Below, piece by piece: positions 7,390 to 63,965 of a stretch of DNA of 64,000 bases. Position numbers and translations under genes: made by a program. Under the pieces are notes generated by a model. That model was given only the letters and a program-made list of their open reading frames with translations, made no database searches and was not told the origin of the DNA. Every line of letters starts with the position of its first letter. Positions within the stretch are counted from its first letter, which is position 1. Location: contig NIVC01002488.1 in assembly GCA_002269645.1 (NCBI GenBank), positions 62,001 to 126,000 on the forward strand, written 5' to 3'. This stretch comes from Macrostomum lignano (Eukaryota).

Positions 7390-8574
7390 TCAGTCTATTT
7401 CAATAAGAGTTGGAATTCGAACCTTTCCATCGGAACCTCTGCGCCGAGGGACACAATGATGCTGAGCGCAAATCGGAAACTTCTTCTTGAAACAAAAGTC
7501 TCTTAGCTTAAACTGCTTTCCCTGTCCTCGAAAAGTTCTCTGATCGAAAGTACACAGAGCGTACCTGAGCTCAAAGTATTTGTCAGCGTGCACAAGATAC
7601 ACGGTTCCAAATTTGAGTCCTCTTAATATTTCTTTAAACTTGCCGCTGCACTGGCAGTTTAGGCCTGACCATGAATCTGGAGGCTTTTTAACGACTTTTT
7701 GTACCGGGTTTTTTTTGCACGCGTCGCAGTTCCAGTTGTGCAGCAGTATATTTTCTCCGTCATTCTGGTTTAAAAAGTTCAGGGGCTTGCTTAGTTGCCC
7801 CTGAATTACCAGACGATGCTCTTCTGAGCAGCAGAAGTGCTTTGGAGGTTCAAAATTGACACTCTTCACCGAAATTCCAATCTTCTTCCACTCGGGTTCG
7901 GCTCCAGGATTGACATTTACCTCTTTCTCTATCCGCAGGTCGTACTTTTCTGTTTCACGACAATACACGCAGCCAGGCACACGGAAATCCGGGTGAAAGC
8001 TGACGTGAGTTAAAGCCAAGTACTCTCCGAAAATAGACTCTTTAATATCGTTTTTTTCACTGTGAAGAATCATCTCTAGCAAGCACGGGATCTCTGTCAC
8101 TTTACTTGAATTTCGGAAAACTTCGAAAGTGATGTTGGCATCTTTGAGCAGCAAGTAAAGAGATGCAGCAGCCAATCCTTCTGAGTAGCTGTCAGGGACG
8201 TGAACCACTGTAGCTTCAGACAGCTTCCATTGGTTAGGGTTGTCTAGAAGATGAACAGACAGTCTGTCAGCTTCTTGATTGGATCTTTCACGAACCACAG
8301 GCCTTTTATGAACCACCTCGAATGGTGTTCCTGTAACACATACGCTCTTTCTGAATATAGTGTAGGCTTTTTTGTAAACGGTAAGGAATTTGGGATCACC
8401 ATACTGTCCTGAAGACTCGCTGGCAGTTAAAACAGTTAGCAAGGCAGCAAGTTCGTTGCCGCCAGGCAGATCAGCAAAGTTTATTTTGTCGAGTTCCTCT
8501 ACCAGCTCTTTGTTGTAGCGCGCCGCTATGGTTTGATTCGAAGGATTTATTACATTCGCTGTTACACTGGCCAT
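7390..8574 (-). CDS. Intronless 394-aa hypothetical protein with Cys/His-rich C-terminal half; no family recognised
   Basis: Uninterrupted 1185-bp non-repetitive ORF, start context acaATGG, ordinary amino-acid composition. Motifs CVYC, HFCCSEEH, HNWNCDAC, CQC, CAQHHC. Confidence 0.75.
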   Translation of the reverse strand: MASVTANVINPSNQTIAARYNKELVEELDKINFADLPGGNELAALLTVLTASESSGQYGDPKFLTVYKKAYTIFRKSVCVTGTPFEVVHKRPVVRERSNQEADRLSVHLLDNPNQWKLSEATVVHVPDSYSEGLAAASLYLLLKDANITFEVFRNSSKVTEIPCLLEMILHSEKNDIKESIFGEYLALTHVSFHPDFRVPGCVYCRETEKYDLRIEKEVNVNPGAEPEWKKIGISVKSVNFEPPKHFCCSEEHRLVIQGQLSKPLNFLNQNDGENILLHNWNCDACKKNPVQKVVKKPPDSWSGLNCQCSGKFKEILRGLKFGTVYLVHADKYFELRYALCTFDQRTFRGQGKQFKLRDFCFKKKFPICAQHHCVPRRRGSDGKVRIPTLIEID

Positions 8575-9539: not shown

Positions 9540-10567
9540 ATGGCTTTGCTTGGCTTTTACGATGGAATTCTAAAAGAGTTGCTTAGCGCCTGCGAAATCG
9601 CACGCAATGCTGATCAGCCCCTGCTCCAGACCGCAGAAGACTCTCCACTGCTGAAGTTCTGTCTAGAAGAGACCAATGAATCGAGTTGTCAACTCATCAT
9701 TCAGCGGGCTGAAAGTGCACACCAGGTCGATGCTGTCTCAGCGCTTTGCTGGACTTCGCCGCATCACCAGGTTGCTATGAGAGTCTCAAGACAAATTGAA
9801 GACTTGACAATGGACTCTGGAAACCAGCAAACTCAGCTCATTCTGTACGACTTGTGCCGATTTGCTTTCAAATACTTGAAGGAGCCCCAAAAACCCGACC
9901 TGAAAATACTTACTAATGAAAAATTGATAATGAGCTTGTTCGACTTCAAGAGACAGCCGGACCATCAGCGAGTGGAAAATTTCCTTGTAAGTGCCTACCT
10001 GTTTATGCACCTTATCCGAGTGCCAGGTGACAGACTTATGACCGTATTTGAAGACGCAAATAGCAGCCTTTGCATCCAGATTGGTGATGGACCCCGAAGC
10101 TCGATTCGAAAGTTGACTTTCGACTGCAGCACCGAAACAGATGAGTCTTTCGAGCAACAATTTCTCAAAACCCTGAGTGAGGGTGGCTCTCCATTGTACA
10201 TCTGTTTATTCTTTAACGAACTGAAGACTTGCAGCTGGTACCTCAATGAAAAGGGCAAGGACAAGCAGCACGATAGGCTCCCGAATCATGACACAAGCTT
10301 GATCAAGCTCGAAGGCGATGGCTCGAAGCTGAATATCTCAGTGACAGCCTTCGATAGCGTTGAAGACAAATACAGCAGCTTCCAGATGGAGCTGAGTGCG
10401 GATGCAGCATTCTCACCCGATCGGTTTGGAGACGATAAGCTGCTGTCGACTGTAGTTCGCCTCGTTCGAAAAGTCGTGGTGGAGCAGAAGCCGGCCAACC
10501 TCTGCCTCGTCTGCCTTACCGTTCCGTGTCGGACAGCCATTAAGTGGTTGGACATCGCTTCCGGCAG
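9540..10567 (+). CDS. Exon 1: ~343-aa domain of unknown family
   Basis: Long non-repetitive ORF ending exactly at a strong donor AG|GTGAGT (10567/10568). Confidence 0.8.
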
Positions 10568-13500
10568 GTGAGTCGCTTATTTTTTAATTGGGTGGAGCAG
10601 GGCTTATTGGATATTTGCTTTTTTACTGTATATACCAAAGAGGAACTGCAAAACAGATTTTAAAATTTTTGGTCACATTATTTCACTATGGCTAGTTGCT
10701 TATTGTGGTTATAAATTGTGATATTTGTAGTCGTATACAGTGTGTGGGAGTCTTGCTCACTTTCATCGATATTTTAATGATGCCAATGAGTGTCAAAGCT
10801 GTCACCGTAACCGTAAACCGTATTACTTCATTCCGTTGCTGAGTTAACGAAGTAAAATGACAGCTAAATATTACAAATTTGAATGTGATTTTCAAAAACG
10901 CCAGTGCTTTTATATTTTTCAGGGAGACATCATGTTGTACAGAAGAAGGCCAAACAGTCCCATCTTTTGAAGACGCTCAGTTATCGGTAGGTTTTCCAAT
11001 ATCCACCTGTTATATCGATTTATGTACTTAATTATTATTTTCGATTTGATTCCAACAACTATCGTTCATGATCATTTTTCTCTATAAGAAAATTAGTGCG
11101 TAGTGTTGATTAATACTAAAAACTATAGTAACCGTCTTTGTAATTAAATAAAAAAAGTTTCTTCCAATTTTCCAGATTTTTCATTCAGCAGCTAGTGGAG
11201 ATGTTGCATTGCTGAGGCAGAGACTGGAGTACAACCGACTATTGGTTAGTGCTCGGCAGCAGGAGTTTCCACATCGCACCGCTCTACTCTGTGCTGCAGC
11301 AGCTGCTCCAGAATACTTTTCTCAGGGTCAACAATCGCACACTGAATGTGCGAGCCTACTCATCAACAAAGGAGCTGATGTTGGAGACTGTGACTCTCGC
11401 GGACACTCGGTGCTGCACTGTGCGGTTCTCTCTGACAATGAAAAATTGGTTGAGTTTCTGCTGAAAAATTCAACTGCAGATCCAAACAGCAGAGACGAGG
11501 ATGGTCTGACACCCCTGCAGCTTGCGGTAGAGCAGGAGAACGTTGCCATGGCAGACCTATTTCTGGAAAGTGGGGTGGATGTCTGTCTGAATCCCGACGG
11601 AACCATTGTTGAACTTGTCCAAGCTCTCGACTCCGAAAACTTTGAGCTCGTGAGGACACTCCTAAATCATTGTCCGGAAGCAATGTCCGACGACCAGTTT
11701 TATAAGTACTACTGGCAAGCGTGGAAACTGGATGCGACTCAAATCTGCAGTCTTCTTTTGATGTATGTATGCTCATAGGTATTTTCCAAAAAGTTATTTT
11801 TTTCAATCTAATCGAACTGTAAATTTTTATTGGTCACCTTTTTAGATCAAAATATGGTCTTTCGAACGAAGCGGTTCAGGTAATTTCCCCAGTTTTTCTA
11901 AGCACTGATTATATATGAAACACTTTAACATAAATGTTCTTAATGTTTATTTGCATATGACTGTATAATTGTACATTAGAATATTCATGATTTAGAAAAG
12001 TTATTGGGTTTTTTTATCAAAGCAGCAATGAGACTTCAGACATCGTAAATCATTCCACTTTTTCGCTAAAAACCCACATTTAGGAAGCAGCTCAACTCGG
12101 TCAGTTTGCATCTCAAGGCGATGTCGAGCAGCTCAAATCGAGGCTCAGCGTCTACAACTGCAACCTCCGAGACTGGGACTGCAGAACTCCGCTAATGTGG
12201 GCAGCCATCGCTAGTTGCGACCCCACAGAGGGACATGCAGACTGTGCTCAGCTGCTGCTCAGTCTGAGAGGAAACCCTAGCGCTGCCGATCTTGACGGCA
12301 ACTCATCATTGCACTTGGCTGCAGCATCCAACAATATTGAAGTGGCGGCGCTGCTGCTGCTGCACGGAGCCGACGTGAAGGTGAAAAACCGGAAAGGCGC
12401 CTTTCCGGCTGAGCTGGCCAAGCAAAGCGGCCAGCTGGATGTGCAACTCATCATGGAGACCGCTGAGGAGCTGGAACGGTAAGAGCTCTTTTATAGATTA
12501 TGCTGATTACTATAATTAAATGTATAGTAAAATTACGATAGAGCGAAACCCGAGTTACTGAGACGCGTGTGACCCAAGTCAAGTATGAGTAGTTCCGTAA
12601 GTCTAGACTGCGTAGCGAGTGAACACCTTCGCTTCCTAAATGGCTTAATATTAAGCGGCTTATGTGGCACAATCCAGATAACAATTACATGCATACAAAA
12701 ATTGATACGAAGCCGCTTTGGTAGATTGCATCAATCCGCCGTAACGCTAGCAATAAAAAAATGAGGATTGTTCGGGAGAGGGGGTAGACCAGGGGTCGCA
12801 AACTCAGACTCTCAGGGCTCATCCAGCCCGTAAAGCCTCTCTATGCGGCCCTTTGAAACTTCACACCTACAATTCGGTGTATATTTTTATGCAACGTTTT
12901 GTGCTTTTATCAGCTCTCCTCTCAGTCCTCACCTCTCTCAATTCTTCTCTCTTTTCTCTTCCCTCCCCTCTCCTCCCATCTCTCCTTTTTCGCTTCTTCT
13001 TTTCTCTCATCCACTATCGTTTTTTCTATCATCTCCTCTCTCTCATCCCCTCTCCTTTATTCTCTACTCTCTTCTCAGCCCTTATCCCATCCCTTATTTT
13101 TTCTTCTCTCTACCCTATTTCCCCTCCTTTCGTTTCTTATTTGGCCTGCAGAAACGATCTAGTTTCTTTATATAGCCTTTGGAGGAAAAATGTTAGCCAA
13201 TCCCAAGGGTAGCCAGTCGGTGGGTCGCCTGAGCAGTTTGAGTTCTGTAGGGTTGCGTTTGGTTTGGGCCGTCGGGTGGGGGCTGCTCTATTAGTACATG
13301 TACTTGCATCTCGCTTTCTTCTCTGTGCATGCCCACCACCCCAGTTGGGTGAGTCACTTATATCGATTTATCATCGCTGACTATTTAATCGCTCCTAAAT
13401 TATCGTGCATCAAAATATACATCGTAAATTAACTCTAAATTCTCGGCTCTTACAGTTATATATGGAAATAAAGCTGTGAGTGAACTCTCATGCTGGATAT

Positions 13501-16500
13501 GAGTAGCAAAAAAATAACCTTTATATCACCGCAAATAAAACAGAGGATCAGGAAAGTTTCGACAAAATAAAAACGAAGGGAACGGAATGGAGGGAGAAGA
13601 AAAGATGAGACAAATTGTATTCTAAGAGAAGGAACGATTACTAATGGAGTTAAATAAAGGTGAGCAAATAAAAAAACGAATTGACTATTTGATGAGATGG
13701 GCAGACAACAGCCGATTGTATATCTTAGGAGGTATTAGATTAGTTAACCTGGTAAATTAGCTCGTACAAAAAAGAGCTTCATGATACCGCAGTGACAATA
13801 AGAGGCGCAGGGACGGAGCAATGACAGGGGCTGCTGGGGGCAAGAGATGGCAGGGAGACGAGAAAGCGTCTCTGGACTCCTCAAAGGCCAGGTCTCCCAG
13901 CAACGAAACCTCAGCCCGGGTGCAGGAGTCAACCTAAATAGAAAGTGAAACCCCGTGGACCCAGACCGAGTTTCAAACATTGAATAAAATGTTAACGAAA
14001 AAATCGACACAGGGATAGTGGGGCTGTTCAAAAGCACTGGGACATAGAAGTGACTGTCATTCTCCATATCCACTTTTTTCCTCGGCCCTCTTTCTCCCTA
14101 CCTCCCCTCTTTCTTCTAGCCTTTTCATTTCAGTCCCCTCTAAACCCCTCCTCTTTCTCCCTTCCGTTTTCATATCTCCCCTCATTCTCCTCTCTGACCC
14201 TCCCTTTTTCTGCCTCGCTCTTCTCCTTCTCTTCTCTTTCTCCCCATCTTTGCATCTCCTCTATCATCCTCTTTTGTCCTCCCAAAAGTCTTGGACAGTT
14301 GGCACATGTCTACAACACGCCACCTAAACTATCAACAGCCATACAATTGACCAAAATTTCAGTCGCCATGGGGCAGTCACCGTTGGAAAATCCACAGAAA
14401 TTAGAGCTGATCTGCAGATTCGACCAAGACAAACATGGAGCACCCTGTTTTACAAAGAAAATATTCGCATGGCTGGAAGCAATGGTCACTTGAAAGTCGT
14501 CAAATTTCTCGTGACACAAGTCGCGGACCAAGCAAACAGAGATCGCTGCTGCATCTACGCTGCAGAATCTGCTGCAACAAATGGTCAATTAGAAGTCGTC
14601 AAGTTTCTCGTTTCGACCGTCTCTGACCAAACAAAAAGAGATCGCTGCTGCATCTACGCTGCAGAATCTGCTGCAACAAATGGTCAATTAGAAGTCGTCA
14701 AGTTTCTCGTTTCGACCGTCGCTGACCAAACAAAAAGAGATGATTACTGCATCACAGCTGCAGAATCTGCTGCAAGCAACGGTCAGTTGGAAGTCGTGAA
14801 GTTTCTCGTTCCCACAGTCACTGACGAAACAAAAAGAGATTATTTCTGCATCAAAGCTGCAGAATCTGCTGTTGTCTGGGGTCAATGGGAAGTCGTCAAG
14901 TTTCTCGTTCCGACAGTCGCTGACGAAAAAAAAAGAGATTATTTCTGCATCAAGGCTGCAGAATCTGCTGCAATCAAGGGCCACTTTGAAGTCGTCAAGT
15001 TCCTCGCTCACAAAGTCACCGACCAAACAAAAAGAGATGATTGCTGCATCAAGGCTGCAGAATCTGCTGCAACAAATGGTCAATTAGAAGTCGTCAAGTT
15101 TCTCGTTTCGACCGTCGCTGACCAAACAAAAAGAGATGATTACTGCATCAAAGCTGCAGAATCTGCTGCAATCTGGGATCGGTGGGACGTCGTCAAGTTT
15201 CTCGTTCCCATAGTCACTGACAAAACAAAAAGAGATGATTGCTGCGTCAAAGCTGCAGAATCTGCTGCAATCAAGGGCCACTTTGAAGTCGTCAAGTTTC
15301 TCCTACACACAATCGCTGACCAAAAAAAAAGAAATGATTGCTGCATCAAAGCTGCAGAATCGGCTGCAACAAATGGTCAATTAGAAATCGTCAAGTTTCT
15401 CGTACACACAGTCGCTGACCAAACAGAAAGAGATGATTGCTGCGTCAAAGCTGCAGAATCTGCTGCAATCAAGGGCCACTTTGAAGTCGTCAAGTTCCTC
15501 GCCGACACAGTCTCTGACCAAGCAAAAAGAGATGATTGCTGCATCAAAGCTGCAGAATCGGCTGCAACAAATGGTCAATTAGAAATCGTCAAGTTTCTCG
15601 TACACACAGTCGCTGACCAAACAAAAAGAGATGATTGCTGCGTCAAAGTTGCAGAGTCTGCTGCAATCAAGGGCCACTTTGAAGTCGTCAAGTTCCTCGC
15701 CGACACAGTCTCTGACCAAGCAAAAAGAGATGATTGCTGCATCAAAGCTGCAGAATCGGCTGCAACAAATGGTCAATTAGAAGTCGTCAAGTTCCTCGCC
15801 GACACAGTCTCTGACCAAACAAAAAGAGATGATTTCTGGATCAAACCTGCAAAAGCTGCTGCAACAAATGGTCAATTAAAAGTCGTCAATTTTCTCGTTT
15901 CGACCGTCGCTGACCAAACAGTAAGAGATGATTGCCGCATCAAAGCTGCAGAATCGGCTGCAACAAATGGTCAATTAGAAATCGTCAAGTTTCTCGTACA
16001 CACAGTCGCTGACCAAACAGAAAGAGATGATTGCTGCGTCAAAGCTGCAGAATCTGCTGCAATCAAGGGCCACTTTGAAGTCGTCAAGCTCCTCGCCGAC
16101 ACAGTCTCTGACCAAGCAAAAATAGATGATTGCTGCATCAAAGCTGCAGAATCGGCTGCAACAAATGGTCAATTAGAAATCGTCAAGTTTCTCGTACACA
16201 CAGTCGCTGACCAAACAAAAAGAGATGATTGCTGCGTCAAAGTTGCAGAGTCTGCTGCAATCAAGGGCCACTTTGAAGTCGTCAAGTTCCTCGCCGACAC
16301 AGTCTCTGACCAAGCAAAAAGAGATGATTGCTGCATCAAAGCTGCAGAATCGGCTGCAACAAATGGTCAATTAGAAATCGTCAAGTTCCTCGCCGACACA
16401 GTCTCTGACCAAACAAAAAGAGATGATTTCTGGATCAAACCTGCAAAAGCTGCTGCAACAAATGGTCAATTAAAAGTCGTCAATTTTCTCGTTTCGACCG

Positions 16501-19500
16501 TCGCTGACCAAACAGTAAGAGATGATTACTGCATCAAAGCTGCAGAATCTGCTGTTGTCTGGGGTCAATTAGAAATCGTCAAGTTTCTCGTACACACAGT
16601 CGCTGACCAAACAAAAAGAGATGATTGCTGCGTCAAAGCTGCAGAATCTGCTGCAATCAAGGGCCACTTTGAAGTCGTCAAGTTTCTCCTACACACAATC
16701 GCTGACCAAAAAAAAAGAAATGATTGCTGCATCAAAGCTGCAGAATCGGCTGCAACAAATGGTCAATTAGAAATCGTCAAGTTTCTCGTACACACAGTCG
16801 CTGACCAAACAGAAAGAGATGATTGCTGCGTCAAAGCTGCAGAATCTGCTGCAATCAAGGGCCACTTTGAAGTCGTCAAGTTCCTCGCCGACACAGTCTC
16901 TGACCAAGCAAAAAGAGATGATTGCTGCGTCAAAGCTGCAGAATCTGCTGCAATCAAGGGCCACTTTGAAGTCGTCAAGTTCCTCGCCGACACAGTCTCT
17001 GACCAAGCAAAAAGAGATGATTGCTGCATCAAAGCTGCAGAATCGGCTGCAACAAATGGTCAATTAGAAATCGTCAAGTTTCTCGTACACACAGTCGCTG
17101 ACCAAACAAAAAGAGATGATTGCTGCGTCAAAGTTGCAGAGTCTGCTGCAATCGAGGGCCACTTTGAAGTCTTGAAGTTTCTCGTTCTCAAAGTCACTGA
17201 CAAAACAAAAAGAGATGATTACTGCATCAAAGCTGCAGAATCTGCTGTTGTCTGGGGTCAATTAGAAATCGTCAAGTTTCTCGTACACACAGTCGCTGAC
17301 CAAACAAAAAGAGATGATTGCTGCGTCAAAGCTGCAGAATCTGCTGCAATCAAGGGCCACTTTGAAGTCGTCAAGCTCCTCGCCGACACAGTCTCTGACC
17401 AAGCAAAAAGAGATGATTGCTGCATCAAAGCTGCAGAATCTGCTGTTGTCTGGGGTCAATTAGAAATCGTCAAGTTTCTCGTTCCGACAGTCGCTGACGA
17501 AACAAAAAGAGATGATTACTGCATCAAGGCTGCAGAATCTGCTGCAATCAAGGGCCACTTTGAAGTCGTCAAGTTTCTCCTACACACAATCGCTGACCAA
17601 AAAAAAAGAAATGATTGCTGCATCAAAGCTGCAGAATCGGCTGCAACAAATGGTCAATTAGAAATCGTCAAGTTTCTCGTACACACAGTCGCTGACCAAG
17701 CAAAAAGAGATGATTGCTGCATCAAAGCTGCAGAATCGGCTGCAACAAATGGTCAATTAGAAATCGTCAAGTTCCTCGCCGACACAGTCTCTGACCAAAC
17801 AAAAAGAGATGATTTCTGGATCAAACGTGCAAAAGATGCTGCAAGAAATGGTCAATTAAAAGTCGTCAAGTTTCTCGTTTCGACCGTCGCTGACCAAACA
17901 GTAAGAGATGATTACTGCATCAAAGCTGCAGAATCTGCTGTTGTCTGGGGTCAATGGGAAGTCGTCAAGTTTCTCGTTCCGACAGTCGCTGACGAAACAA
18001 AAAGAGATTATTTCTGCATCAAGGCTGCAGAGTCTGCTGCAATCAAGGGCCACTTTGAAGTCGTCAAGTTTCTCCTACACACAATCGCTGACCAAAAAAA
18101 AAGAAATGATTGCTGCATCAAAGCTGCAGAATCGGCTGCAACAAATGGTCAATTAGAAATCGTCAAGTTTCTCGTACACACAGTCGCTGACCAAACAGAA
18201 AGAGATGATTGCTGCGTCAAAGCTGCAGAATCTGCTGCAATCAAGGGCCACTTTGAAGTCGTCAAGATCCTCGCCGACACAGTCTCTGACCAAGCAAAAA
18301 GAGATGATTGCTGCATCAAAGCTGCAGAATCGGCTGCAACAAATGGTCAATTAGAAATCGTCAAGTTTCTCGTACACATAGTCGCTGACCAAGCAAAAAG
18401 AGATGATTGCTGCGTCAAAGCTGCAGAATCTGCTGCAATCAAGGGCCACTTTGAAGTCGTCAAGTTCCTCGCCGACACAGTCTCTGACCAAGCAAAAAGA
18501 GATGATTGCTGCATCAGCGCTATAGAATCTGCTGTAATCTGGGGTCAGTGGGAAGTCGCCGAGTTCCTCATTCCGTGTCTCTCAAGTCCGAATCAAAAAG
18601 CAAATCTCCGTTTCCAATGCGCAGTGGTGGCTTGCTCTCATCTTCGCGAAGATTTCGTCGCCGCCCTCGGCCTGGAGCCCGACTGGCTCTTCCAATCCAG
18701 CACCATCCTCAGCTTCACTGCAGCAATGGCCATCGAAGGCAGGAACTCTGTTCTCACTGACACCCTCTCTCGAATGCAGCCAGCTCACATCACACAGCTG
18801 CTTTGTCTCTCCATCTCTCAAAGACACGTCGCTCTTGCTGTCACACTGATCTATGATGAGCGAGTCAGCACAGAGCATATCGATCTGCCAGACAGCACTG
18901 GAGCCACTGCTCTCATGCTGGCAGCTGATGCAGGTCATCACGAGCTCATTGAGAAACTCATCGATCTCGGTGCGTCAGTGCGTGCTAAAGACAGTCAGGG
19001 TCGGACTGCTCTGTCACGAGCGTGCGAAGCCGGTCACGTTCGAGCAGCCAAGGCTCTGTTGGACAGAGGAGCGGATGCGAGTCATCGAGACGGTCGGGGC
19101 CTGACGTGTGCGCAGGTGGCACAGCGATATGAGCAGCGGCAGGTGCTGCGGCTGCTAAATCCTAGTGAAGTGAGGTGAGTTAAGCGAGAATTTAACGATT
19201 TTTTTTCAATATACGAGTATGTTGCTTAAGTATAGCATTTCTGAAATTATACGAGTTTTTCATGAGCTAGGAAACGCTTGGTAAGAATCGCTTCAAATAG
19301 AAAATACGAGTATTTCGTATGTTTGGGCCATGTAGCGAACACAAGAACGAGGGAAGAAGTGAAGAAGAAAAAAGGGGATAAAATACGACGACAAAAAACA
19401 TGTAGAAAAATATCATTTTGCATTTTTAATTTTCATGAGACAAAACAAGGAATAATTTTAAAAAGATAAGAGAGCGAAGAAACCTTATGTGAAAACTGTT

Positions 19501-22500
19501 GGATTTTGTAAAACGAGCAAAGTTTGTGATTGCGAGAAATCCAACTTGGCGCTCAGGCCTGACAATCGATACATTTTAGCAGCCGATAATTGGGGTGGGG
19601 TTTGGGTGTTGCACGCGCACGGGCGCAGCCGCACGTTGCAAACAACCACCCCCATACACAGCTACGTACAGCATACGAGCGTAGAGCTAAGAACACCAAT
19701 AGAATATTTAGGTGCATAGAATGCTCACAATTTGAATGTATTAATAATAAATGAGATTAAAAACGAAATCATTTTTTTAATTTTATTAATCATATTAATC
19801 ATATAATAATTATCCCTGCTGGCAGAGAAGAGGATCAGGCCAAGCCCAGTACGTACGCACATCTGGCCAGGTGGTGGGGCACGAACAGGCCCCTGCTTGG
19901 GCACTAATGCCGGTTTGCTCAGGTGCAAACACAGAGCAGACCACATTCGCTTCAATATCCTAAACTCTGAAGACTCGAATATCCGGTCCAACAAGTGACC
20001 TTCTCTTACAATTTGCGGATTTCTCCCACTCTTTTCTCGGCTTTCTCTTGTTTATTGCCTGCTTTCTCTCGGTCATCTGCTTCTGCCTGCATCTACTTAC
20101 TCTTTTTGATTTTTCTGCCCGAAAAAGCGTTGGAGTTTTGATGAAGCTGCACTAACTGGGCGCTTCGCCTTGAAATGCTTTTACAATGGAAGTTTCCGAC
20201 TCAATGAAGTTGGTTTGTGCTTCATGAGAATCTCAGACTCAACTGCTGTGAGAACCCTTGGCTTTCTCCTTCCCTTGCAGAAGCTCAAAGGCCGAGCAGG
20301 CAGCCGCACACTGCTTGGATTCGGGCCTCCATCGGTGAGTCTGACCGGTTCGGCTTTCACTGCCGCACTGCGCCTTCCAACAGGCTGGCAGCTTGGGACA
20401 GAAATTGTAGCGAAACTCAGGTGGGTTAAGATTGGGTTGGACTGAGTGCTGAAGCAGCTGCACTCTCAGCTCTCCTGCTTGCTCTATCCATCTAACTCTG
20501 AACAAATCACCCACACGCATGTCGGATCATTTTAGGCTCTCAGACGACTCCCAGAAAGACAGGCGCCTGAGCGAGGAGCTGCATCGATTGCTCAGTGAGG
20601 CGGGATTCACCAGAGAGAGAGCGGACTGTCAACAGAGACTGGCTGACTGGCTTGAACGAGTCGCTCGAGTCCTCACACAGGATGACAGACAGATGACGGG
20701 CAGCTACGCAGAGGGCTGGGCCAACAGTCTGGTTCAAGTGAACGGCAGGACAGCTGCAGACTCGGACATTGACTGGACTGTACTGGTTTCTGGGAAACTG
20801 TTTCATCTGGAAGGCAGCTGCATAAGATTGAATAAGTCCTGCAGAGACGCCACTCGGCTGCAGGTCACGGAGGGCCACGCACAGGTGGCAGTGGAAGCAG
20901 GTTAGTGAGGCTGAGTTCATCATCAGAATGCTCATCAAATGCATCAGAATGACACAAGCGGCAGGCGAAATTAAAAAGAAAACTCTGATGCCAACTGGCT
21001 GAGCCATTGGGTTTTGAATTCACAGGCTCCAATTGTAGCAGAGTGGGTGCAGCGCTGTTTGAGTGATGGACGGTAGGCGGCATGGCTCTGCTGAGGTGCT
21101 GCTACTCTTACTGAGAAAGTTTCAAAAAATAAAACGAAGCCGCTCCGACTGTCTGATTGGTGCCTTGCTGCGAGGCAATGAGTCCAGATAATGTTTGATT
21201 TGTGCTGAGCTAGCTACATGTATAACCCGAGAAAGCCAGAACAGCTGAAGCTGAAGGGGTCTACGACAATTTTACCGCCACCCTATTTTACCTTGTCTAG
21301 AACGGCCGTAAAATTTTCTGGCGGTCAGTTGTCGGTCTCCCAAGCTGAAGCTATGCAAACTCAGTTTACTCAGTAAACTCAAACTCATTTAGACAGCGTC
21401 CAAATTCTCTGGCGTGTTATCAAGCAGCTTGAGCGGGATGCCAAAATCGACTAAATAAAAATTAAAAGTCTAAATAAGCGCGTACACGCACTTTAAATAC
21501 ACGCACTGGCAAAAGCGCTCAGAAACCAAAATAATTTCAGCGCGCTGGTGATTTCGATCAGGAGAGCCAAGTCAAGTGCACTTTTACTTGACAATAAATT
21601 CGATCGAAGGCATTAGTGGTAAACATATGCACATTATAACTCTTTCACTACTGATCCACTGATGACACAATTTGATACTTGTAAAGGCTATGCAAATCGT
21701 TTTTTGCATATACAATCATGCAAATGAATGATCGAATTTTAAAGCTTCCGAACTGTACATGTAACTCCCTATCGCGCGCTTGCCAGTGCGTGCCTGAAGC
21801 ATATTTCATCGGACAGTCAAATACTCGATATTCCCAACCAGCCAAGAGAAAATCTGCTGTTTTTAAGCCAACTCATCTATTTTACTCGCCACAAAGCAAC
21901 TCTCCGCTCACTGCGTTCTGCAGGTGGCCAACCTGCAGTGACAGCCACGGCGTGCGGTGTGCGGCCTGCACAGGACACGTGCCATGCGACCCGGTGCTGC
22001 AGAAGTTTCTGTGAGGACAGAATTGAAAAACTGCTCTTATACAGTGATTCTGTTCACCTCGTTCGGGCGACCAGACCGAGCTCGACCAACGAGCTCAGAG
22101 TGAGCTTCAGCTTCCAAGAGAAACGGATCATGAGAGAGCTGAGCACAATCCAGGGCCAGCTGTTCACACTCATCAAGTTCATCTTCAAGAGATACTTGCC
22201 GCTCACTCTGGACACACCTGGACTCAAGACCTACCATGCAAAGACTCTGCTCTTCACAATGCTGGAGAAGTATGACACAGATCCTAAGACTGTGGTTTGG
22301 CAGCCCCATAATCTGATCGCTCTGCTCAAGGAGTCTCTCAACATGATGCTGAGCTTCATCGACTCAAGCAGCTCGCCCGATGAGTGCATGCCGCACTTCT
22401 TCATGCCCGACGCTCCGCTCTACTTCAAGTACGCTGGAATCGGCGGCGACTTCGACAACACGAAGGCGAGGGTTCGAGACCAACTTTGTGAACTGAGAAG

Positions 22501-23380
22501 CGACATCGGCGGAGTGGTAAAGCAGCTGAGGAGACTCGTGAGACCTCCGCAGTCAGAGAAGTTCTATTTTCACCCGTTCACTCTGCTGCCTCTGACAGCA
22601 CCGCCTGCTGTCACGGAGATCAGGAAAGGACGTGGCTCTCAACAATTGTACTGCAAGTTCGCAGATGTGTACAGTTTGGTGCACCAGTGTGTAAGTGAGC
22701 TGCAGTCGGAATCGAGCGACAGAGACACCCTGATGAAGCACCTCAGTCTCCTGCATGAGCAGCAGTGGTGCAAGTGCGCCGCCTTGTGCATGACCGCCAT
22801 GGCGCATTTGAAGTTTGGAGAATCTGAGGAGGCTGAGAGACTCGCGATGGAGCTGCAGAGACATCAGATTGAGTCAGGGTTGAAGCCACAGGATATTCGA
22901 GAAGAGAGCTGGTGGAACATTACTCGTACAAAACTGCCAGAAGACTCAGACTGGGCATGGAGGTTCTGCCTCCCCTGCGACTCTTCGCCTCACTTCCCGT
23001 TCCTTCCCGAGTTCACACAATCTCTATTCACAGCCAGACTGTCGCAGCCTCTCGCCTCCCACCTGTACGTGAACTTCCGCTGCCTGAGCTGGAGTCTCCA
23101 AGCTGAGCTGCTCCGCAATCGCGCACCTGCAATCGCATTCGATCATTGGATTGAACAGCTGCTTGAAGACCCGGACTTGGAGGAGCTGCTCACTCTGGCT
23201 CACTACAGCGACTGCTGCGAGCACGTGGAGCTCAGCCTGCAGCAGATGGAGATGATCAAGAAAGAGAGACGCGTCGCCATAGAGACGCAGGACGAGGAGA
23301 AGATCAGCTGGGTCAGACAGAAGCTGGAGAGACTTAATGATGCAGTAGCCGAAGTCCATCGGTCGGAAAAGGAAGGCTGA
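9540..23380 (+). CDS. Predicted 9-exon gene (8820 nt CDS, 2939 aa): unknown N-domain, ankyrin modules, 42x33-aa ankyrin-like array, Mab-21/cGAS-like nucleotidyltransferase
   Basis: Exons 9540-10567, 10923-10986, 11176-11762, 11846-11879, 12084-12478, 14339-19174, 20281-20334, 20536-20900, 21924-23380. All eight introns are GT..AG and phases match (2,0,2,0,2,2,2,1). The weakest junction is the acceptor at 14338. Confidence 0.7.
10923..10986 (+). CDS. Exon 2: short linker (ETSCCTEEGQTVPSFEDAQLS)
   Basis: tttttcAG acceptor and GTAGGT donor. It converts phase 2 to phase 0, as needed to join exons 1 and 3. Confidence 0.7.
11176..11762 (+). CDS. Exon 3: ankyrin repeat module A
   Basis: ttttccAG acceptor. 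Canonical ANK motifs GADV..DSRGHSVLHCAV and ADPNSRDEDGLTPLQLAV. Donor GTATGT. Confidence 0.85.
11846..11879 (+). CDS. Exon 4: short linker (SKYGLSNEAVQ)
   Basis: cctttttAG acceptor and CAG|GTAATT donor; phase 2 to phase 0. Confidence 0.65.
12084..12478 (+). CDS. Exon 5: ankyrin repeat module B
   Basis: RTPLMWAA, DLDGNSSLHLAAASNNIEVAALLLLHGADV. Ends at CG|GTAAGA; the alternative is termination at TAA 12480-12482. Confidence 0.85.
12790..13205 (+). mobile_element. hAT-like MITE with a pyrimidine-rich core (in intron 5)
   Basis: Begins CAGGGGTCGCAAACT. Its 3' end (ggcctgcag..tctttatatagcctttg..gccaatccc) resembles the reverse complement of 30791-30865. Confidence 0.45.
14339..19174 (+). CDS. 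Exon 6: 41 full plus 1 capping 33-aa (99-bp) ankyrin-like repeats, followed by canonical ankyrin repeats
   Basis: 1569-aa ORF with no stop across about 4.1 kb of tandem repeat. C-terminal DSTGATALMLAA and DSQGRTALSRAC ankyrins. Ends at AG|GTGAGT. Confidence 0.9.
20281..20334 (+). CDS. Exon 7: 54-nt symmetric linker exon (SSKAEQAAAHCLDSGLH)
   Basis: Strong acceptor ctttctccttcccttgcAG, strong donor GTGAGT, open in phase 2-2. Confidence 0.65.
20536..20900 (+). CDS. Exon 8: N-terminal lobe of a Mab-21/cGAS-like nucleotidyltransferase
   Basis: TGSYAEG (G at 20699) and DSDID (Asp codons at 20765 and 20771) match the GS and D-h-D metal-binding motifs of the pol-beta/cGAS fold. Confidence 0.85.
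21924..23380 (+). CDS. Exon 9: Mab-21 domain plus helical C-terminal extension
   Basis: HLVRA, ELRVSFSFQEK, LIKFIFK, LKTYHAKTLLF and CMPHFF match the Mab-21/cGLR patterns HLVP, WRxSFSxxE, SYHxKTxxF and PHxF. Stop TGA at 23378-23380. Confidence 0.9.
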
Positions 23381-30790: not shown

Positions 30791-31220
30791 CAGGGATCGG
30801 CAGATTTTTATCTCAAAGGCCAGATAAAGAATCCAGCTCATGGCTGCGGGCCAGATGAGAGTAAAAAGGAAAAGGAATAGACTATTAGAAAGGGAGGAGG
30901 GGTGAGAGGGGATAAGAGAGCAGATAGAAGATAACAGGAGAGACAAGGGGGTTGAGGAGAGAGCAGAGAATATGGGACGAAGAAGCGAGAGGGGGGAGAG
31001 AGAAGGGAGACGAAATAGTAGAGGTGAGAAGATGGAGAGAGAAGAGGGGAGAGATGAGACAGAGGATCGATGAGAGAGGAGAGTGGAGAAGAGTGAGAAG
31101 AGATGAGAGATGAGAGAACAGAGAGGCAAATGAGAGAGGATCGAGAGGAGAGATTAGAAAGGATAGAGAAGAGAGGAGATAAGAGGGGGAGAGAGAGGAG
31201 TGAGAAGAGAGGAGATAAGA

Positions 31221-31292
<72 letters not shown>

Positions 31293-32338
31293 GAGAAAGG
31301 AGAGATGATAGAGTAAAGGGAAGAGGAGGAGAGAAAAAAGAGATGAGATGAGAGAGATGAGAGAGATGAAAGGAAAGATGAGAGATGAAGGAAGAGAGAG
31401 CAGAGTGCAGAGAGACGAGAGAAGAGAATAAAGGGGAGAGAGTATAGAAGAGGGAAGAGAAGAGAGGAGTAAGGAAAGAGAGGAGTCAGAAGAGGGGAAA
31501 GAGAAGAGTACACAGTAGAGAGGAGAGTAGAGATGACAGAAGAGAGAGGGAAATGAGAGAGCAAAGATGAGAGTGAACAGACGATATAATTGAGAGGAGA
31601 GAGGAGAGTGGAGAGAGAAGAGAGAAGACAAGAGAGGGAGAGAGTATAGAAGAGAGAAGAGAAAAGATGAGAAGGAAGAAGAAAGGAAAGAGAGTCCTGA
31701 GTCAAAAAGGGGAAAGAGAGGAGTACAAGAAGAGAGAGGTGAGAGAACATATGAGAATAAAGATGACAGATGAGAGAGGGGAGATGAGAGAGCAGAAACC
31801 AGAGTGAACAGACAAGAGATGGGAGAGTAGAGAGAAGAGAGGAGAGATAAGAAATAAGAGATGAGATGTGGAGACAAGGGAGAGATGAGAAGTGAGTGAA
31901 GAGAGAGGAGGGGAAGGGAGAGAATTGAGAGGACAGGGGAAATTGGTGAAAAGGACGAGAGAGGAGAGGAAAGAGAGGAGAGATTAGTGAGAAGAGAGAT
32001 AGGACAGGAGAGAGCATAGAGAAGAGAGGAGAGAGAGAAGAGAAATGAGAAAAGATAAGAGAGAGAGAGAAGATAAAAGAAGAGAAATGAGATATAAGAG
32101 AGCAAAGACGAGAGAGAAGGGAGGTGAGAGAAAAGAATAGAGGGAGAGGGAAGAGACGAGAGAAGAGGGGAAAGAGGAGAGAGGACAGAGAAGAGAAAAA
32201 AGAAGAGATAAGAGGAGAAAAAGAGGAGACGAGAGACGTGAGAAAAGATAGGAAACAGAAAAGAAGATGAAAGTTTTAAAGGATGCAAAGTACATAGGGA
32301 GAGGCAGAGGTAGAGGCCAGAGTTTGCCTGACATTCTG
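30791..32338 (-). mobile_element. hAT-like MITE with an expanded ~1.4-kb GA/CT low-complexity core
   Basis: Ends cagggatcggc and gagtttgcctgacattctg resemble CAGGGGTCGGCAAACT termini; related to 12790-13205. Core is almost pure purine on the + strand with (GA)n at about 31226-31290. Confidence 0.45.
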
Positions 32339-36994: not shown

Positions 36995-37699
36995 ATGGCG
37001 CCACCCACTGAGTCAACTGTTGCACTCAAGCTGCCCACGTTTTGGGCCATGCAGCCACGCGCGTGGTTCATCCAGGCAGAGGCCCAGTTCCAGCTGCGCG
37101 GCATCACCCAGGACGACACCAAGTATCACCACTTGGTCGCCTCGCTTGATCAACAAACCGCCGAGCGCCTGCTGGACGTTCTGGAAAGCCCTCCGAGCGA
37201 GGACAAATACGGCAAACTGAAAGGGCGCCTGCTCGGCACTTTCAGTCTCACCCGGCAGCAGCGAGCTAGCCGTTTGCTCAGCATGTCCGGCCTGGGAGAT
37301 CGCCGGCCGTCCGAGATGATGGACGAGATGCTGGCCCTGCTTGGTGATCACCGGCCTTGCCTGCTCTTTGAGGAGCTGTTCCGCCAGCAGCTGCCCGTGG
37401 ACATCCGGATGGCGCTCGCATCCGCCGACTTCGAAGACCCCCGGACAGTCGCGCAGCTCGCCGACCAGCTCTGGGCCAGCCGTCCCCAGCCAGTGGCCGC
37501 TTCCGCCCAGTTGGCAGGTCCGCCGGAGGTTTGCGCTGCGCGTCAGGCTGCGCGTCCCCGCACCACGTCGCCCCGGCCTGTGCACCGCGGCACCCGCGCC
37601 CAGGAGCTGTGCTACTTCCACCGCAAGTTCGGCGCGAAGGCTAGGCAATGCGAGCAGCCCTGCAGCTTTCCGGGAAACGGGCCGGCCGGCCGCCAGTGA
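36995..37699 (+). CDS. gag: Gag, 234 aa
   Basis: [18 protein letters not shown] gag N-terminus and C-terminal [18 protein letters not shown] zinc motif. Confidence 0.92.
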
Positions 37700-40600
37700 C
37701 CATCGCGGCGGCCGGCAACCTGCTGCTCATCCCCGACGTCCCATCCGGCCGGCGGTTCCTGGTGGACACAGGCGCCGAGGTAAGCATTTTCCCAGCCTCT
37801 GCAGATGATGCCCGCGCCCGTTCACCTGGCCCGCCGCTGTTCGCCGCGAACGGCACCCGCATCCGAACCTTCGGCGGCCGCAGCATCACACTGGACGTCG
37901 GCCTGAAGACCTGCACCTGGCCATTCGTGTTGGCTGAGGTCTCCCGGCCGTTGATCGGCGCCGACTTCCTGCGCCACCACGGCCTGCTGGTGGACCTGCC
38001 CAACCGCCGCCTTCTGGACGCCGCCTCCCTGGCCAGTGTGCAATTGCTGGCTGGCTCCGGTTCTGCGCCTCAGCTCGCCGCCGCGGTTGCCAGGGACCCG
38101 TACAGCCGGTTGCTGGCGGAGTTCCCCAGCATCACGGAGCCCAGTTTCAGCAAAGCCACGCCGCGGCACGGCGTGGAGCACTACATCCCGACGACGGGCC
38201 CGCCGGTGCACGCTAGAGCGCGCCGCCTGCCGCCCGACAAGCTGGCCGCGGCCAAGGAAGAGTTTCGCAACCTGGAGCAGCTCGGCATTGTGCGGCGGTC
38301 CAGCAGCCCCTGGTCCTCGCCGCTGCACATGGTGCCCAAGACTTCCGGCGGTTGGCGGCCCTGCGGCGATTTCCGGCGGCTCAATGACGCCACGGTGCCC
38401 GACCGCTACCCCGTGCCGCATATCCAGGATTTCTCAGCGCGCCTGAGCGGCTGCACAGTGTTCTCGAAGATCGACCTGGTGCGGGGCTACCACCAGATCC
38501 CGGTCGCGCAAACGGACATCCCGAAGACCGCCGTCATTACACCGTTTGGGTTGTTTGAGTTCCTCCGCATGCCGTTCGGGTTGAAAAATGCGGCACAGGC
38601 CTTCCAGCGGTTAGTAGATTCTATCTGCCAGGACCTGCCGGCCGTCTTCGCGTACATCGACGATTTCCTGGTCGCCAGCAGCAGCCCCGAGCAGCACGAG
38701 GAGCACCTGCGGAAGCTGTTCCAGCGCCTCGCCGACAACGGCCTGTTGCTCAACCCAGCCAAGTGCCAGTTTGGCCGCAGCGAGATCGATTTCCTCGGCC
38801 ACAGGATCAGCGCTGCGGGCGCCATGCCGCTGCCGGACAAGGTCGACGCAGTCGCCAGGTTCGCGCCGCCCACGACGGTGAAGGGTCTCCAGGAGTTTGC
38901 CGGCATGGTGAACTTCTATCACCGCTTCGTGCCCCGCGCAGCCCGGTTGCTGCGCCCGATCTACCAGGCCATGGCCGGCAAGGAGAAGCTGGTGCGGTGG
39001 ACGCCGGAGCTGACCGAGGCCTTCGACAAGACCAAGCAGGCGCTGGCCGACGCGACCATGCTGGCGCACCCCAGGCCCGACGCGCCGCTGGCCCTCACCG
39101 TAGATGCTTCTGACACCGCCGTGGGCGCCGTCCTCGAGCAGCGTGTCGGCCCCGCCTGGCAGCCGCTCGCATTCTTCAGCCGGCAGTTGCGACCTGCGGA
39201 GGTAAAGTACAGTGCCTTCGACCGCGAGCTCCTGGCACTGTACCTAGCGGTCCGCCACTTCCGTTACCTCCTTGAGGGGCGCCACTTCACAGCCTACACG
39301 GACCACAAGCCGTTGGCCGCCGCCATGGCCAAGCTGTCCGACCCGTGGTCCGCTCGGCAGCAGCGGCACCTGGCGTACGTGAGCGAATTCACCACGGACG
39401 TCCAGCACATCGCCGGCAAGAACAATCCGGTGGCCGACGCGCTGTCCCGCTGCACCGTGGCCAGCGTGCTACCCGGCATCGATTTTGCAGCGATGTCGCA
39501 GGCCCAGCATGCCCCGACCGAGTTGCCGCCGCCCGGCTCCGGCCTCCGACTGGAGCGCGTGACCCTCCGCCCAGGCCTGGAGCTGCTCTGCGACGTCTCC
39601 ACCGGCCATCCCCGCCCGCTGGTGCCGCCCGAATTTCGACGGCCGGTGTTCGACGCCATCCACGGCCTTGCGCACCCATCAATCCGCAGCTCCCGCCGCC
39701 TCGTTGCAGACCGTTTCGTCTGGCCCGGCCTCAACCGCGACGTCGGCCGTTGGGCTCGCAGCTGCCTCGCCTGCCAGACGACTAAGGTCCAGCAGCATGT
39801 TGTCAGCCCGCCAGACAGCATCCCGGTGCCCCGCGACCGCTTCGCGCACGTGCACATCGACCTGGTGGGCCCGCTTCCGCACTCTCAAGGGTGCTCGCAC
39901 CTGCTGACCGTTGTCGACCGGTTCACGCGTTGGCCGGAAGCAATTCCGCTGGCAGACACGTCCGCCGCTACCTGTGCGGCCGCATTCATCGCGCACTGGA
40001 TTGCCCGTTTCGGTGTGCCAAGCGACCTCACGTCAGACCGCGGCCCGCAGTTCACCTCGGAGCTGTGGTCCAACGTGTCCCGCTTGCTTGGCACGCAGCT
40101 GCACCAGACGACGGCCTTCCACCCACAGGCCAACGGGCTTGTGGAGCGGTTCCACCGGCAGCTCAAGGCTTCCCTGATGGCGCGGCTGACGGGCCGTCCT
40201 GGACTGCCGAGCTGCCCTGGGTGTTGCTCGGCATCCGCACCGCTCCCAAGGAGGATCTCGGCACGTCATCGGCGGAGTTGGTGTACGGAGTCCCACTGGC
40301 GGTGCCGGGCGAGTGTCTGCAGACCAGCTCGCCTACGGGCCATGACGGGTTCCTCGCGCGCCTGCGCCAGGCCGTGCAGGCTTTCCGCCCGCCACCGACC
40401 TCCCAGCATGGCCGCCGCCCCACCGCCTTGCCTGCTGTCTTGGACACCTGCACGCACGTCTTCGTCCGCCGCGGCGGGCACCGACCGGCGCTGCAACCGC
40501 CTTATCTAGGTCCCTTCAAGGTGCTGGAGCGCGGCGCTAAGGCTTTCCTCCTCGACCTCGTCACTAGGCGGGACTTCGTGTCGGTGGACCGGCTCAAGCC

Positions 40601-40811
40601 AGCGGCGCTTGACCCTGCGAGCCCGGTTTCGACGCCTCAAATTCGGCCAAGGGGGCGCCCACCGCGTGAGCCCACCGTCCCGGGCGCCGCGACGGCCGAA
40701 CCGCTGCGCCGCCGCCCGCCGCGGCGCCGCCAGCCACGCCGCCGTTGCCGTCGAGTACCGGAGGCCACCGCTGGGGGGAGCCGTGTGGCGGACAAGTGCA
40801 AGCACACCTGA
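37648..40811 (+). CDS. pol: Pol (protease, RT, RNase H, integrase) with one 1-nt frameshift near 40193
   Basis: [58 protein letters not shown]. Continues in another frame as [27 protein letters not shown] to a stop inside the 3' LTR. Confidence 0.92.
37672..37678 (+). promoter_or_regulatory. -1 programmed ribosomal frameshift site G GGA AAC
   Basis: XXXYYYZ heptamer in the correct gag frame; pol is in the -1 frame; a GC-rich self-complementary run follows. Confidence 0.8.
40771..40783 (+). promoter_or_regulatory. Polypurine tract
   Basis: ctggggggagccg immediately 5' of the 3' LTR. Confidence 0.7.
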
Positions 40812-50100: not shown

Positions 50101-62759
<12,659 letters not shown>

Positions 62760-62807
62760 GTGAGGCATTCAGTTTAGCTGGCTAGATCCATTCTATTTTA
62801 GTTTACC

Positions 62808-63965
62808 TCTGATTGGCTAGATTAGCAATCCAGTCTATTCCAATTGATTTGTGATTGGCTAGATTACCAATCCATTCTATTCCAATTGATCTGTGATTGG
62901 CTAGATTTGCAATCCATTCTATTCCAATTGATTTGTGATTGGCTAGATTACCAATCCATTCTATTCCAATTGATCTGTGATTGGCTAGATTTGCAATCCA
63001 TTCTATTCCAATTGATTTGTGATTGGCTAGATTAGCAATCCATTCTATTCCAATTGATTTGTGATTGGCTAGATTAGCAATCCATTCTATTCCAATTGAT
63101 CTGTGATTGGCTAGATTAGCAATCCATTCTATTCCAATTGATTTGTGATTGGCTAGATTAGCAATCCATTCTATTCCAATTGATTTGTGATTGGCTAGAT
63201 TAGCAATCCATTCTATTCCAATTGATTTGTGATTGGCTAGATTAGCAATCCATTCTATTCCAATTGATTTGTGATTGGCTAGATTAGCAATCCATTCTAT
63301 TCCAATTGATTTGTGATTGGCTAGATTAGCAATCCATTCTATTCCAATTGATTTGTGATTGGCTAGATTAGCAATCCATTCTATTCCAATTGATCTGTGA
63401 TTGGCTAGATTAGCAATCCATTCTATTCCAATTGATCTGTGATTGGCTAGATTAGCAATCCATTCTATTCCAATTGATCTGTGATTGGCTAGATTAGCAA
63501 TCCATTCTATTCCAATTGATTTGTGATTGGCTAGATTAGCAATTCATTCTATTCCAATTGATTTGTGATTGGCTAGATTAGCAATCCATTCTATTCCAAT
63601 TGATTTGTGATTGGCTAGATTAGCAATCCATTCTATTCCAATTGATCTGTGATTGGCTAGATTAGCAATCCATTCTATTCCAATTGATTTGTGATTGGCT
63701 AGATTAGCAATGCATTCTATTACAATTGATCAGTGATTGGCTAGATTAGCAATGCATTCTATTCCAATTGATCAGTGATTGGCTAGATTAGCAATGCATT
63801 CTATTCCAATTGATCAGTGATTGGCTAGATTAGCAATCCATTCTATTCCAATTGATTTGTGATTGGCTAGGTTAGCAATTCATTCTATTCCAATTGATCT
63901 GTGATTGGCTAGATTAGCAATCCATTCTATTCCAATTGATTTGTGATTGGCTAGGTTAGCAATGC
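62808..63965. repeat. 42-bp minisatellite (GATTGGCTAGATTAGCAATCCATTCTATTCCAATTGATTTGT)
   Basis: About 27 tandem units in the intron after the EF-hand exon. Confidence 0.95.

Follow-up and report, generated by a model that had tools for sequence, protein, structure and literature searches.

A giant ankyrin-repeat protein of the flatworm Macrostomum lignano with a predicted cGAS-like nucleotidyltransferase domain and a 41-unit repeat array

We analyzed a stretch of 64,000 nucleotides from Macrostomum lignano (positions 62,001 to 126,000 of the forward strand of contig NIVC01002488.1, assembly GCA_002269645.1), hereafter the window, whose own numbering is used throughout. A series of long open reading frames (ORFs) lies on its plus strand at 9540-23380. 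These ORFs belong to a real, single and already annotated gene, BOX15_Mlig012511g1, whose product joins ankyrin (ANK) repeats to a C-terminal domain predicted to adopt the nucleotidyltransferase (NTase) fold of cGAS and Mab-21 proteins, and which belongs to a family of ANK-containing cGAS-like receptors (ANK-cGLRs). The identity and architecture of the product are the parts of this account in which we have high confidence.

An earlier note on this DNA, made from the letters alone, had joined nine exons in phase into a protein of 2939 aa (9540-10567, 10923-10986, 11176-11762, 11846-11879, 12084-12478, 14339-19174, 20281-20334, 20536-20900 and 21924-23380, all plus strand). When we rebuilt this model, all eight introns were GT-AG and the frame stayed open throughout, but the acceptor of exon 6 had to be corrected. 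Shifting it from 14339 (caacag/C) to a stronger site 24 nt downstream at 14363 (aaatttcag/T) yields a product of 2931 aa that is identical, residue for residue, to GenBank PAA57447.1 (UniProt A0A267E988), annotated as "hypothetical protein BOX15_Mlig012511g1" of Macrostomum lignano; the exact match requires the acceptor at 14363. In the GenBank record for the contig, too, a gene is called whose product has 2931 aa and begins at window position 9540. As the note had also proposed, the continuity of the gene is hidden in an ORF map by stop codons that sit within splice donors, which we could show for four ORFs: TGA within GTGAGT at 10569-10571 and 19176-19178, TAA within GTAAGA at 12480-12482, and TAG within GTTAGT at 20903-20905. 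The only tblastn matches in the 64-kb window were to the ANK-cGLR gene itself, with no second copy. The corrected exons and the parts of the protein that they encode are as follows.

9540-10567, plus strand: exon 1, N-terminal region of ~343 aa with no recognized domain, starting at the ATG of PAA57447.1.
10923-10986, plus strand: exon 2, 64-nt linker with AG/GT boundaries, frame kept, present in the GenBank product.
11176-11762, plus strand: exon 3, canonical ankyrin, N-terminal ANK block 1 (Pfam Ank_2 E=3.8e-31, Ank E=4e-19), conserved in a second M. lignano protein (P0193, see below).
11846-11879, plus strand: exon 4, 34 nt with AG/GT boundaries, frame kept, present in the GenBank product.
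12084-12478, plus strand: exon 5, canonical ankyrin, N-terminal ANK block 2 (Pfam Ank E=3.3e-11).
14363-19174, plus strand: exon 6 with the annotated acceptor (14339 in the earlier note).
14481-18539, plus strand: the array within exon 6, 41 in-register ankyrin-like units of 99 nt (33 aa).
18540-18638, plus strand: degenerate 42nd unit ending the array, from the in-register unit analysis.
18639-19174, plus strand: end of exon 6, conserved linker and three canonical ankyrin repeats just upstream of the enzyme domain, aligning in ~15 paralogues.
20281-20334, plus strand: exon 7, 54-nt linker that paralogue alignments cross unbroken.
20536-20900, plus strand: exon 8, N-terminal spine helix with the initial part of the NTase core.
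21924-22642, plus strand: first part of exon 9, remaining NTase core and Mab-21_C helical lobe (22211-22420).
22643-23380, plus strand: second part of exon 9, family-specific C-terminal extension of ~245 aa (helices and a small sheet), then the stop codon.

Intron 5 (1.9 kb), which separates the N-terminal module from the array exon, contains a long CT-rich low-complexity stretch at 12843-14300 that yields Ser/Pro/Leu/Phe-rich pseudo-ORFs in three frames.

The public Mlig_3_7 annotation was made from RNA-seq data with STAR, StringTie and TACO together with a de novo transcriptome, and its gene boundaries were cut where evidence of trans-splicing or poly(A) addition falls (PMC5730564). Since this annotation derives from RNA-seq, the reading of the locus as one gene has indirect transcript support. 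In addition, alignments to ~20 paralogues run uninterrupted from the last ANK repeats across all three junctions between the ANK region and the NTase and into the NTase domain. The suggestion that the repeat ORF and the two Mab-21 ORFs encode one protein was therefore borne out, both by the annotated exons with the corrected acceptor and by these alignments.

We then considered the C-terminal domain, which is predicted to be a bilobed cGAS/Mab-21 NTase fold. With 20 homologues as input, AlphaFold2 (AF2) modeled the C-terminal 624 aa at a mean predicted local confidence (pLDDT) of 83.7 and a predicted template modeling score (pTM) of 0.85. The best Foldseek matches to this model in the PDB were mouse and human cGAS (E=4.7e-8 to 1e-6, probability 1.00, TM 0.50-0.57, target-normalized), as the earlier note had anticipated; the alignments covered ~350-400 columns of the 624-residue model at a sequence identity of 13-16%. 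MAB21L1 (5eog/5eom) was also among the matches, after cGAS. Because the cGAS alignments span only about the length of the NTase core, the C-terminal extension appears to be uncovered by structural matches; it is conserved in the paralogues and confidently modeled by AF2. The NTase core itself is mildly basic, with a calculated pI of 8.5. Among sequence searches against the PDB, a single-sequence phmmer run with the last exon found nothing relevant, and a profile made from the family alignment gave no NTase alignment, the search being swamped by ANK matches, with long ANK solenoids (ankyrin-R/B, NOMPC) as its top hits among solved structures. A Foldseek search of viral structures (BFVD) returned a single weak match, A0A3G5A6S9 from Hyperionvirus sp., a protein of unknown function (E=4.4e-4, TM 0.38, target-normalized), which may be a viral Mab-21/cGAS-like fold.

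To assign catalytic motifs, we aligned the domain by MAFFT with cGLR sequences taken from Table S3 of Li et al. 2023 (PMC9980059). In the numbering of PAA57447.1, the GS loop falls at G2380-S2381 (20699-20704) and the acidic pair at D2402/D2404 (20765-20767 and 20771-20773) within S-D-I-D(-W), all in exon 8 and almost unchanged across the family; they align with the GS loop and [DE]x[DE] motif of published cGLRs. The third catalytic Asp, D2464 (21974-21976), is encoded in exon 9 within RPAQDTCHA and aligns with the third Asp in the VDLVPAL, TDLIPAF and YDIIVAL segments of other cGLRs. In Li et al., cGLRs are set apart from Mab21L1/2/3 by a G-S loop followed by [DE]h[DE]h-X50-90-h[DE]h, and Mab21L1/2/3 are described as lacking a predicted functional active site (PMC9980059). 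In our protein, 57 residues separate the two acidic motifs, a spacing that fits X50-90. The set of predicted catalytic residues (GS and the D-x-D...D triad) is thus complete, and the active site is apparently intact.

At the other end of the protein, exon 1 (343 aa) had no Pfam match, its single-sequence AF2 model was unusable (pLDDT 36.8), and a homology search with the N-terminal 387 aa found no match. A search with exons 3-6, however, found one specific relative, P0193, a 591-aa M. lignano UniProt entry that is 36% identical to PAA57447.1 (E=1e-78) over residues 101-577, that is, from within exon 1 to the start of exon 5. As this later search reached exon 1 through P0193, the negative result with the N-terminal 387 aa reflects a limit of sensitivity. 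P0193 has no cGLR part, and no second relative of the N-terminal orphan domain and first ANK block was detected. This domain and block hence form a module that also exists elsewhere without the cGLR part; this suggests that the N-terminal module may be an independent, shuffled unit. The same finding bears on the possibility that the 2931-aa product is a transcript-assembly fusion, in which exons 1-5 would be a separate upstream gene and the ANK-cGLR proper would begin inside exon 6, with the in-frame ATG at 14469 as one candidate start. P0193 ends just after the equivalent of the start of exon 5, in the paralogues P0010 and P0012 the initial Met lies ~40 aa before the array, polycistronic transcription units and trans-splicing are known from M. 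lignano (PMC5730564), and the long intron 5 is low in complexity, all of which would fit a fusion. Against these stand the junction from 12478 to 14363, which is in frame and is used by an annotation that cuts units at trans-splice and poly(A) evidence, the many paralogue models that are marked partial or truncated inside their arrays, and the origin of P0193 in an older assembly, where it may itself be truncated. We consider a fusion unlikely and retain the single-gene model.

We next examined the repeat array in exon 6. Tandem Repeats Finder reported a 99-bp period with 41.4 copies and 82% matches at 14472-18569. In the protein register, the array consists of 41 units of exactly 33 codons each, with no indel or stop, followed by the degenerate 42nd, so that the 42 units counted in the earlier note become 41 plus a degenerate one. 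The unit consensus is xGxxEVVKFLVxTVxDQxKRDDCCIKAAESAAx. In Pfam searches, the array ORF matched Ank_4 (E=4e-150, 24 stretches) and Ank_2 (E=2e-140, 26 stretches), and its best Ank stretches fell at residues 1469-1541, in the three conserved repeats near the enzyme domain; exons 3 and 5 contain canonical ANK repeats, as does the end of exon 6. The canonical TPLH beta-hairpin/helix-1 motif is missing from the array units, CC-I-K-A-A-E-S-A-A taking the place of the expected G-x-TPLHLAA, so that KAAE stands where TPLH would be and a family-specific Cys-Cys pair forms an "RDDCC" signature. As the TPLH motif is replaced and the flanking repeats outside the array (TPLQLA, TALMLAA) are closer to canonical, we regard the array as a divergent ANK-like variant. 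The protein holds ~50 ANK repeats in total.

Pairwise identity between units averages 84.5% in nucleotides (range 70-100%) and 71% in amino acids, with 29 different units among the 41. The term "near-identical" used for them earlier was therefore an overstatement, although some copies are indeed 100% identical. These identical units occupy non-adjacent positions (9=23=32=37, 10=16=24=38, 11=13=19=26, 12=18=27 and 22=29), and a few unit subtypes, in mosaic arrangement, make up the array. Scattered exact duplicates without unit indels indicate recent amplification by unequal exchange.

Whether the array could act as a diversifying sensor was assessed from variation among its units. Units that differ in nucleotides always differ in protein as well, and the pooled Nei-Gojobori ratio of non-synonymous to synonymous differences per site (pN/pS) across units was 0.78. 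Using our own alignment to the ANK consensus, we matched six unit positions to the target-binding sites randomized in DARPins. At these predicted binding positions pN/pS was 1.20 compared to 0.69 elsewhere, a difference that was not significant by permutation (p=0.08; 8% of random six-position sets reached an equal pN). Per-position variability correlated with that of 62 paralogue units (rho=0.62, p=1e-4), which any division of the positions into surface and core would be expected to give. The idea of a diversifying sensor is compatible with these data, and the evidence for diversifying selection is weak. In its full form, with subtype shuffling making the array a fast-evolving recognition module and the ANK-cGLRs having expanded into a repertoire with different specificities, we judge it quite improbable; if true, it would describe an innate sensor system made of repeats and tied directly to the synthesis of nucleotide second messengers, in a phylum believed to be largely without cGLR-STING immunity.

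The same figures can be read in another way, with the array as a neutral, minisatellite-like expansion within a coding exon, or in part an assembly artefact, and the function residing in the three conserved ANK repeats and the NTase that are common to the paralogues. Annotated paralogues have at most ~9-10 such units compared to 41-42 here, with 3.4 copies at the one paralogue locus tested, and the M. lignano genome abounds in tandem arrays, both in the window and at a paralogue locus. Few units in paralogues and a genome rich in non-coding minisatellites make a largely neutral expansion a serious rival, to which the nearly neutral pooled pN/pS, the nonsignificant enrichment at the predicted binding positions (p about 0.08) and the very recent amplification seen in the exact duplicates would also conform. 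It accounts less well for 41 of 41 units of exactly 99 nt without indel or stop, for protein differences in all units that differ in nucleotides, for positional variability that tracks the paralogue arrays, and for the retention of this repeat type across many paralogues. We regard it as the less probable course of events, while granting it more weight than the other alternatives discussed here.

A survey of relatives, as proposed in the earlier note, placed the protein in a family. Searches with the C-terminal domain gave 42 homologues, nearly all of them M. lignano proteins with ANK and Mab-21_C domains, at identities of up to 83%. A search of 1.84 billion representative sequences gave 166 matches, of which 66 are at E<=1e-30; among ten clusters whose source data were sampled, nine reach that level, and eight of these bear M. 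lignano names. The domain is 79% identical to that of the paralogue PAA68676.1 (P0006). A stand-alone Mab-21_C protein of 467 aa (P0027), encoded on a 3.2-kb JGI metagenome contig rather than in the M. lignano assembly, is ~50% identical to the NTase and C-terminal region and possibly comes from another macrostomid in an environmental sample.

The earlier note could not confirm whether a receptor that fuses ANK repeats to a cGAS-like domain had been described before; this combination is already published for M. lignano. In Li et al. 2023, stand-alone enzymes make up 87% of cGLRs, while fusions to TPR or ANK modules occur in some; Ank_2 domains appear under six or more M. lignano accessions in Table S2, and Table S3 gives five M. 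lignano NTase domains, numbers 89-93, that were cloned for a screen of 140 enzymes; number 93 is PAA68676.1 and number 92 is PAA93208.1 (PMC9980059). PAA57447.1 was not found among the entries of these tables that we compared (PMC9980059). A literature search combining Macrostomum with Mab-21, STING or cGAS gave nothing specific beyond Li et al. and nothing on STING in Macrostomum. What is specific to the locus is the extreme array and the added N-terminal module.

Taken together, these data make it rather likely, in our view, that the protein is a member of a large lineage-specific M. lignano ANK-cGLR family with a role in signaling, and this is the best overall explanation of the locus. On this reading the gene encodes a cytosolic 2931-aa protein in which an orphan N-terminal region, two short canonical ANK blocks, 41-42 divergent units encoded in a single exon and three conserved canonical ANK repeats precede the NTase and the C-terminal extension. 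Once activated, the NTase would make a nucleotide second messenger. The ANK solenoid, the most variable part among paralogues, might bind a protein or another ligand, or else regulate or scaffold the enzyme, and the array would have grown through recent unequal crossing-over of a few unit subtypes. We infer both the enzyme activity and an immune role, and we put this signaling mechanism forward tentatively, as possible rather than probable.

Several points weigh against this explanation. Transcript support for the 2931-aa product is second-hand, coming through an annotation rather than from inspected reads. Sequence-level support for a Mab-21 domain is marginal: while ANK matches were strong in the profile searches that the earlier note had proposed, PF20266 (Mab-21_C) scored 25.1-25.9 bits, barely above its cutoff of 24.1, and PF03281, the NTase domain, gave no match, the spliced domain included. 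The sequence call is marginal, but the predicted structure settles the C-terminal domain as a cGAS/Mab-21 fold. D2464 is flanked by Q and T and not by the hydrophobic residues that the published motif requires. Recent copying of 99-nt units keeps a frame open by construction, so that the open frame is no evidence of selection. Finally, in Li et al. the 15 characterized active enzymes are numbered 01-15 and do not include the M. lignano domains 89-93, so that no activity is reported for this ANK-cGLR family, and most flatworms are said to lack immune cGLRs (PMC9980059).

Some of these points would suit a protein in which the Mab-21 domain is not a signaling enzyme, and is instead a scaffold or nucleotide-binding module like MAB21L1/2 or makes a non-immune product, leaving a giant ANK adaptor. 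The structural match to MAB21L1, the lack of a Pfam NTase match, the standing of the screened M. lignano domains outside the characterized active set and the reported scarcity of cGLR signaling in flatworms (PMC9980059) could all be accommodated in this way. The GS motif and three acidic residues are, however, kept in nearly all paralogues, unlike Mab21L1/2/3, and conservation of these predicted catalytic residues over a large and diverged family argues for catalysis. We therefore think a non-enzymatic or non-immune product unlikely and continue to favor a signaling ANK-cGLR.

It could also be imagined that the ANK array binds the nucleotide messenger, so that one protein would both make and sense the signal or would polymerize on it. 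RNase L uses its ANK domain to bind the 2-5A that OAS makes, and this pairing of an OAS/cGAS-fold enzyme with an ANK receptor is an architectural analogy and the sole support for the idea. The array units are without the canonical TPLH hairpin motif, and no effector domain (nuclease or kinase) was found by Pfam after the array. We regard messenger binding by the array as highly improbable.

By itself, the locus is an extreme example (~50 ANK repeats, 2931 aa) of a published class and does not establish a new mechanism. Regarding the role of accessory repeats on cGLRs, Li et al. only note that such fusions exist (PMC9980059). With transgenesis (PMC5730564), RNA interference and dozens of ANK-cGLR paralogues of varied array length, M. 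lignano could serve as a practical system for learning whether the repeats act in ligand binding, in autoinhibition of the enzyme or as its scaffold. Work in this species could also reveal whether a flatworm lineage retained cGLR signaling or invented it anew.

The remainder of the window holds other features. A Cys-rich intronless ORF of 394 aa on the minus strand (7390-8574) is divergently oriented to the ANK-cGLR gene at a distance of ~965 bp; the GenBank record includes it as a called gene, and Pfam gives no domain for it. A Ty3/gypsy-type retrotransposon lies at 36995-40811 on the plus strand in a GC-rich block (58-67% GC compared to ~40-50% around it), with an ORF of 953 aa (RVT_1, RT_RNaseH, Integrase_H2C2, rve) preceded by one of 234 aa (DUF7041); a similar element flanks the paralogue locus L002. 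Dense non-coding minisatellites at 50330-63963, including 23 bp x79, 30 bp x32, TGTC x160 and 42 bp x27.5, cause large swings in GC skew and spurious long ORFs. A degenerate GA/AGAGAGA purine tract of ~1.2 kb at 31035-32248 has a GC skew of +0.51 and an AT skew of +0.41, and the minus-strand ORFs of 467 and 287 aa over it are probably not genes. An Rfam scan of the window gave no match.

Finally, we compared the protein with known systems. The earlier note had described an NLR-style architecture, a label that we rejected for want of a NOD domain: neither NACHT/NB-ARC nor any other STAND module had a Pfam match in the six main ORF translations, which hold nearly all of the coding sequence, and NACHT/NB-ARC is not among the Pfam domains listed for the paralogues. 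What the protein has in common with fungal NLRs of the HET-E/HNWD type is a single exon of tandem repeats that are highly alike and include exact duplicates, a pattern that fits unequal crossing-over and subtype shuffling. It differs from them in that the repeats are N-terminal to an enzyme rather than C-terminal to a NOD, in that mean unit identity is only 84.5% at the nucleotide level, and in that the pN/pS of 1.2 at binding positions compared to 0.69 elsewhere (p about 0.08) does not demonstrate hypervariability. With long ANK solenoids such as ankyrin-R/B (24 repeats) and NOMPC (29 repeats), the array shares 33-residue helix-turn-helix units; it departs from them by KAAE in place of TPLH, by the "RDDCC" signature and by a total of ~50 repeats, more than in ankyrin-R/B or NOMPC.

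The closest comparisons are with the cGLRs themselves. With vertebrate cGAS and the Drosophila, cnidarian and bivalve cGLRs, the protein is predicted to share the bilobed Mab-21 NTase fold, the GS loop, the acidic triad and a mildly basic core. Identity to these enzymes is 13-16%, no Zn-thumb was identified in the domain, the N-lobe is compact and lacks the long insertions of some cGLRs, and the ~245-aa C-terminal extension and very large N-terminal repeat regions set it apart. Its nearest relatives are the ANK-cGLR fusions of Li et al., from the same species and family, which likewise place ANK repeats N-terminal to a cGAS-fold NTase and have the GSYAEGW...SDIDW...RPAQD motifs in common with it. 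In contrast to these paralogues, whose arrays reach ~10 units at most and which are without the N-terminal module, the protein described here combines 41-42 array units with an additional ~700 aa encoded by exons 1-5.

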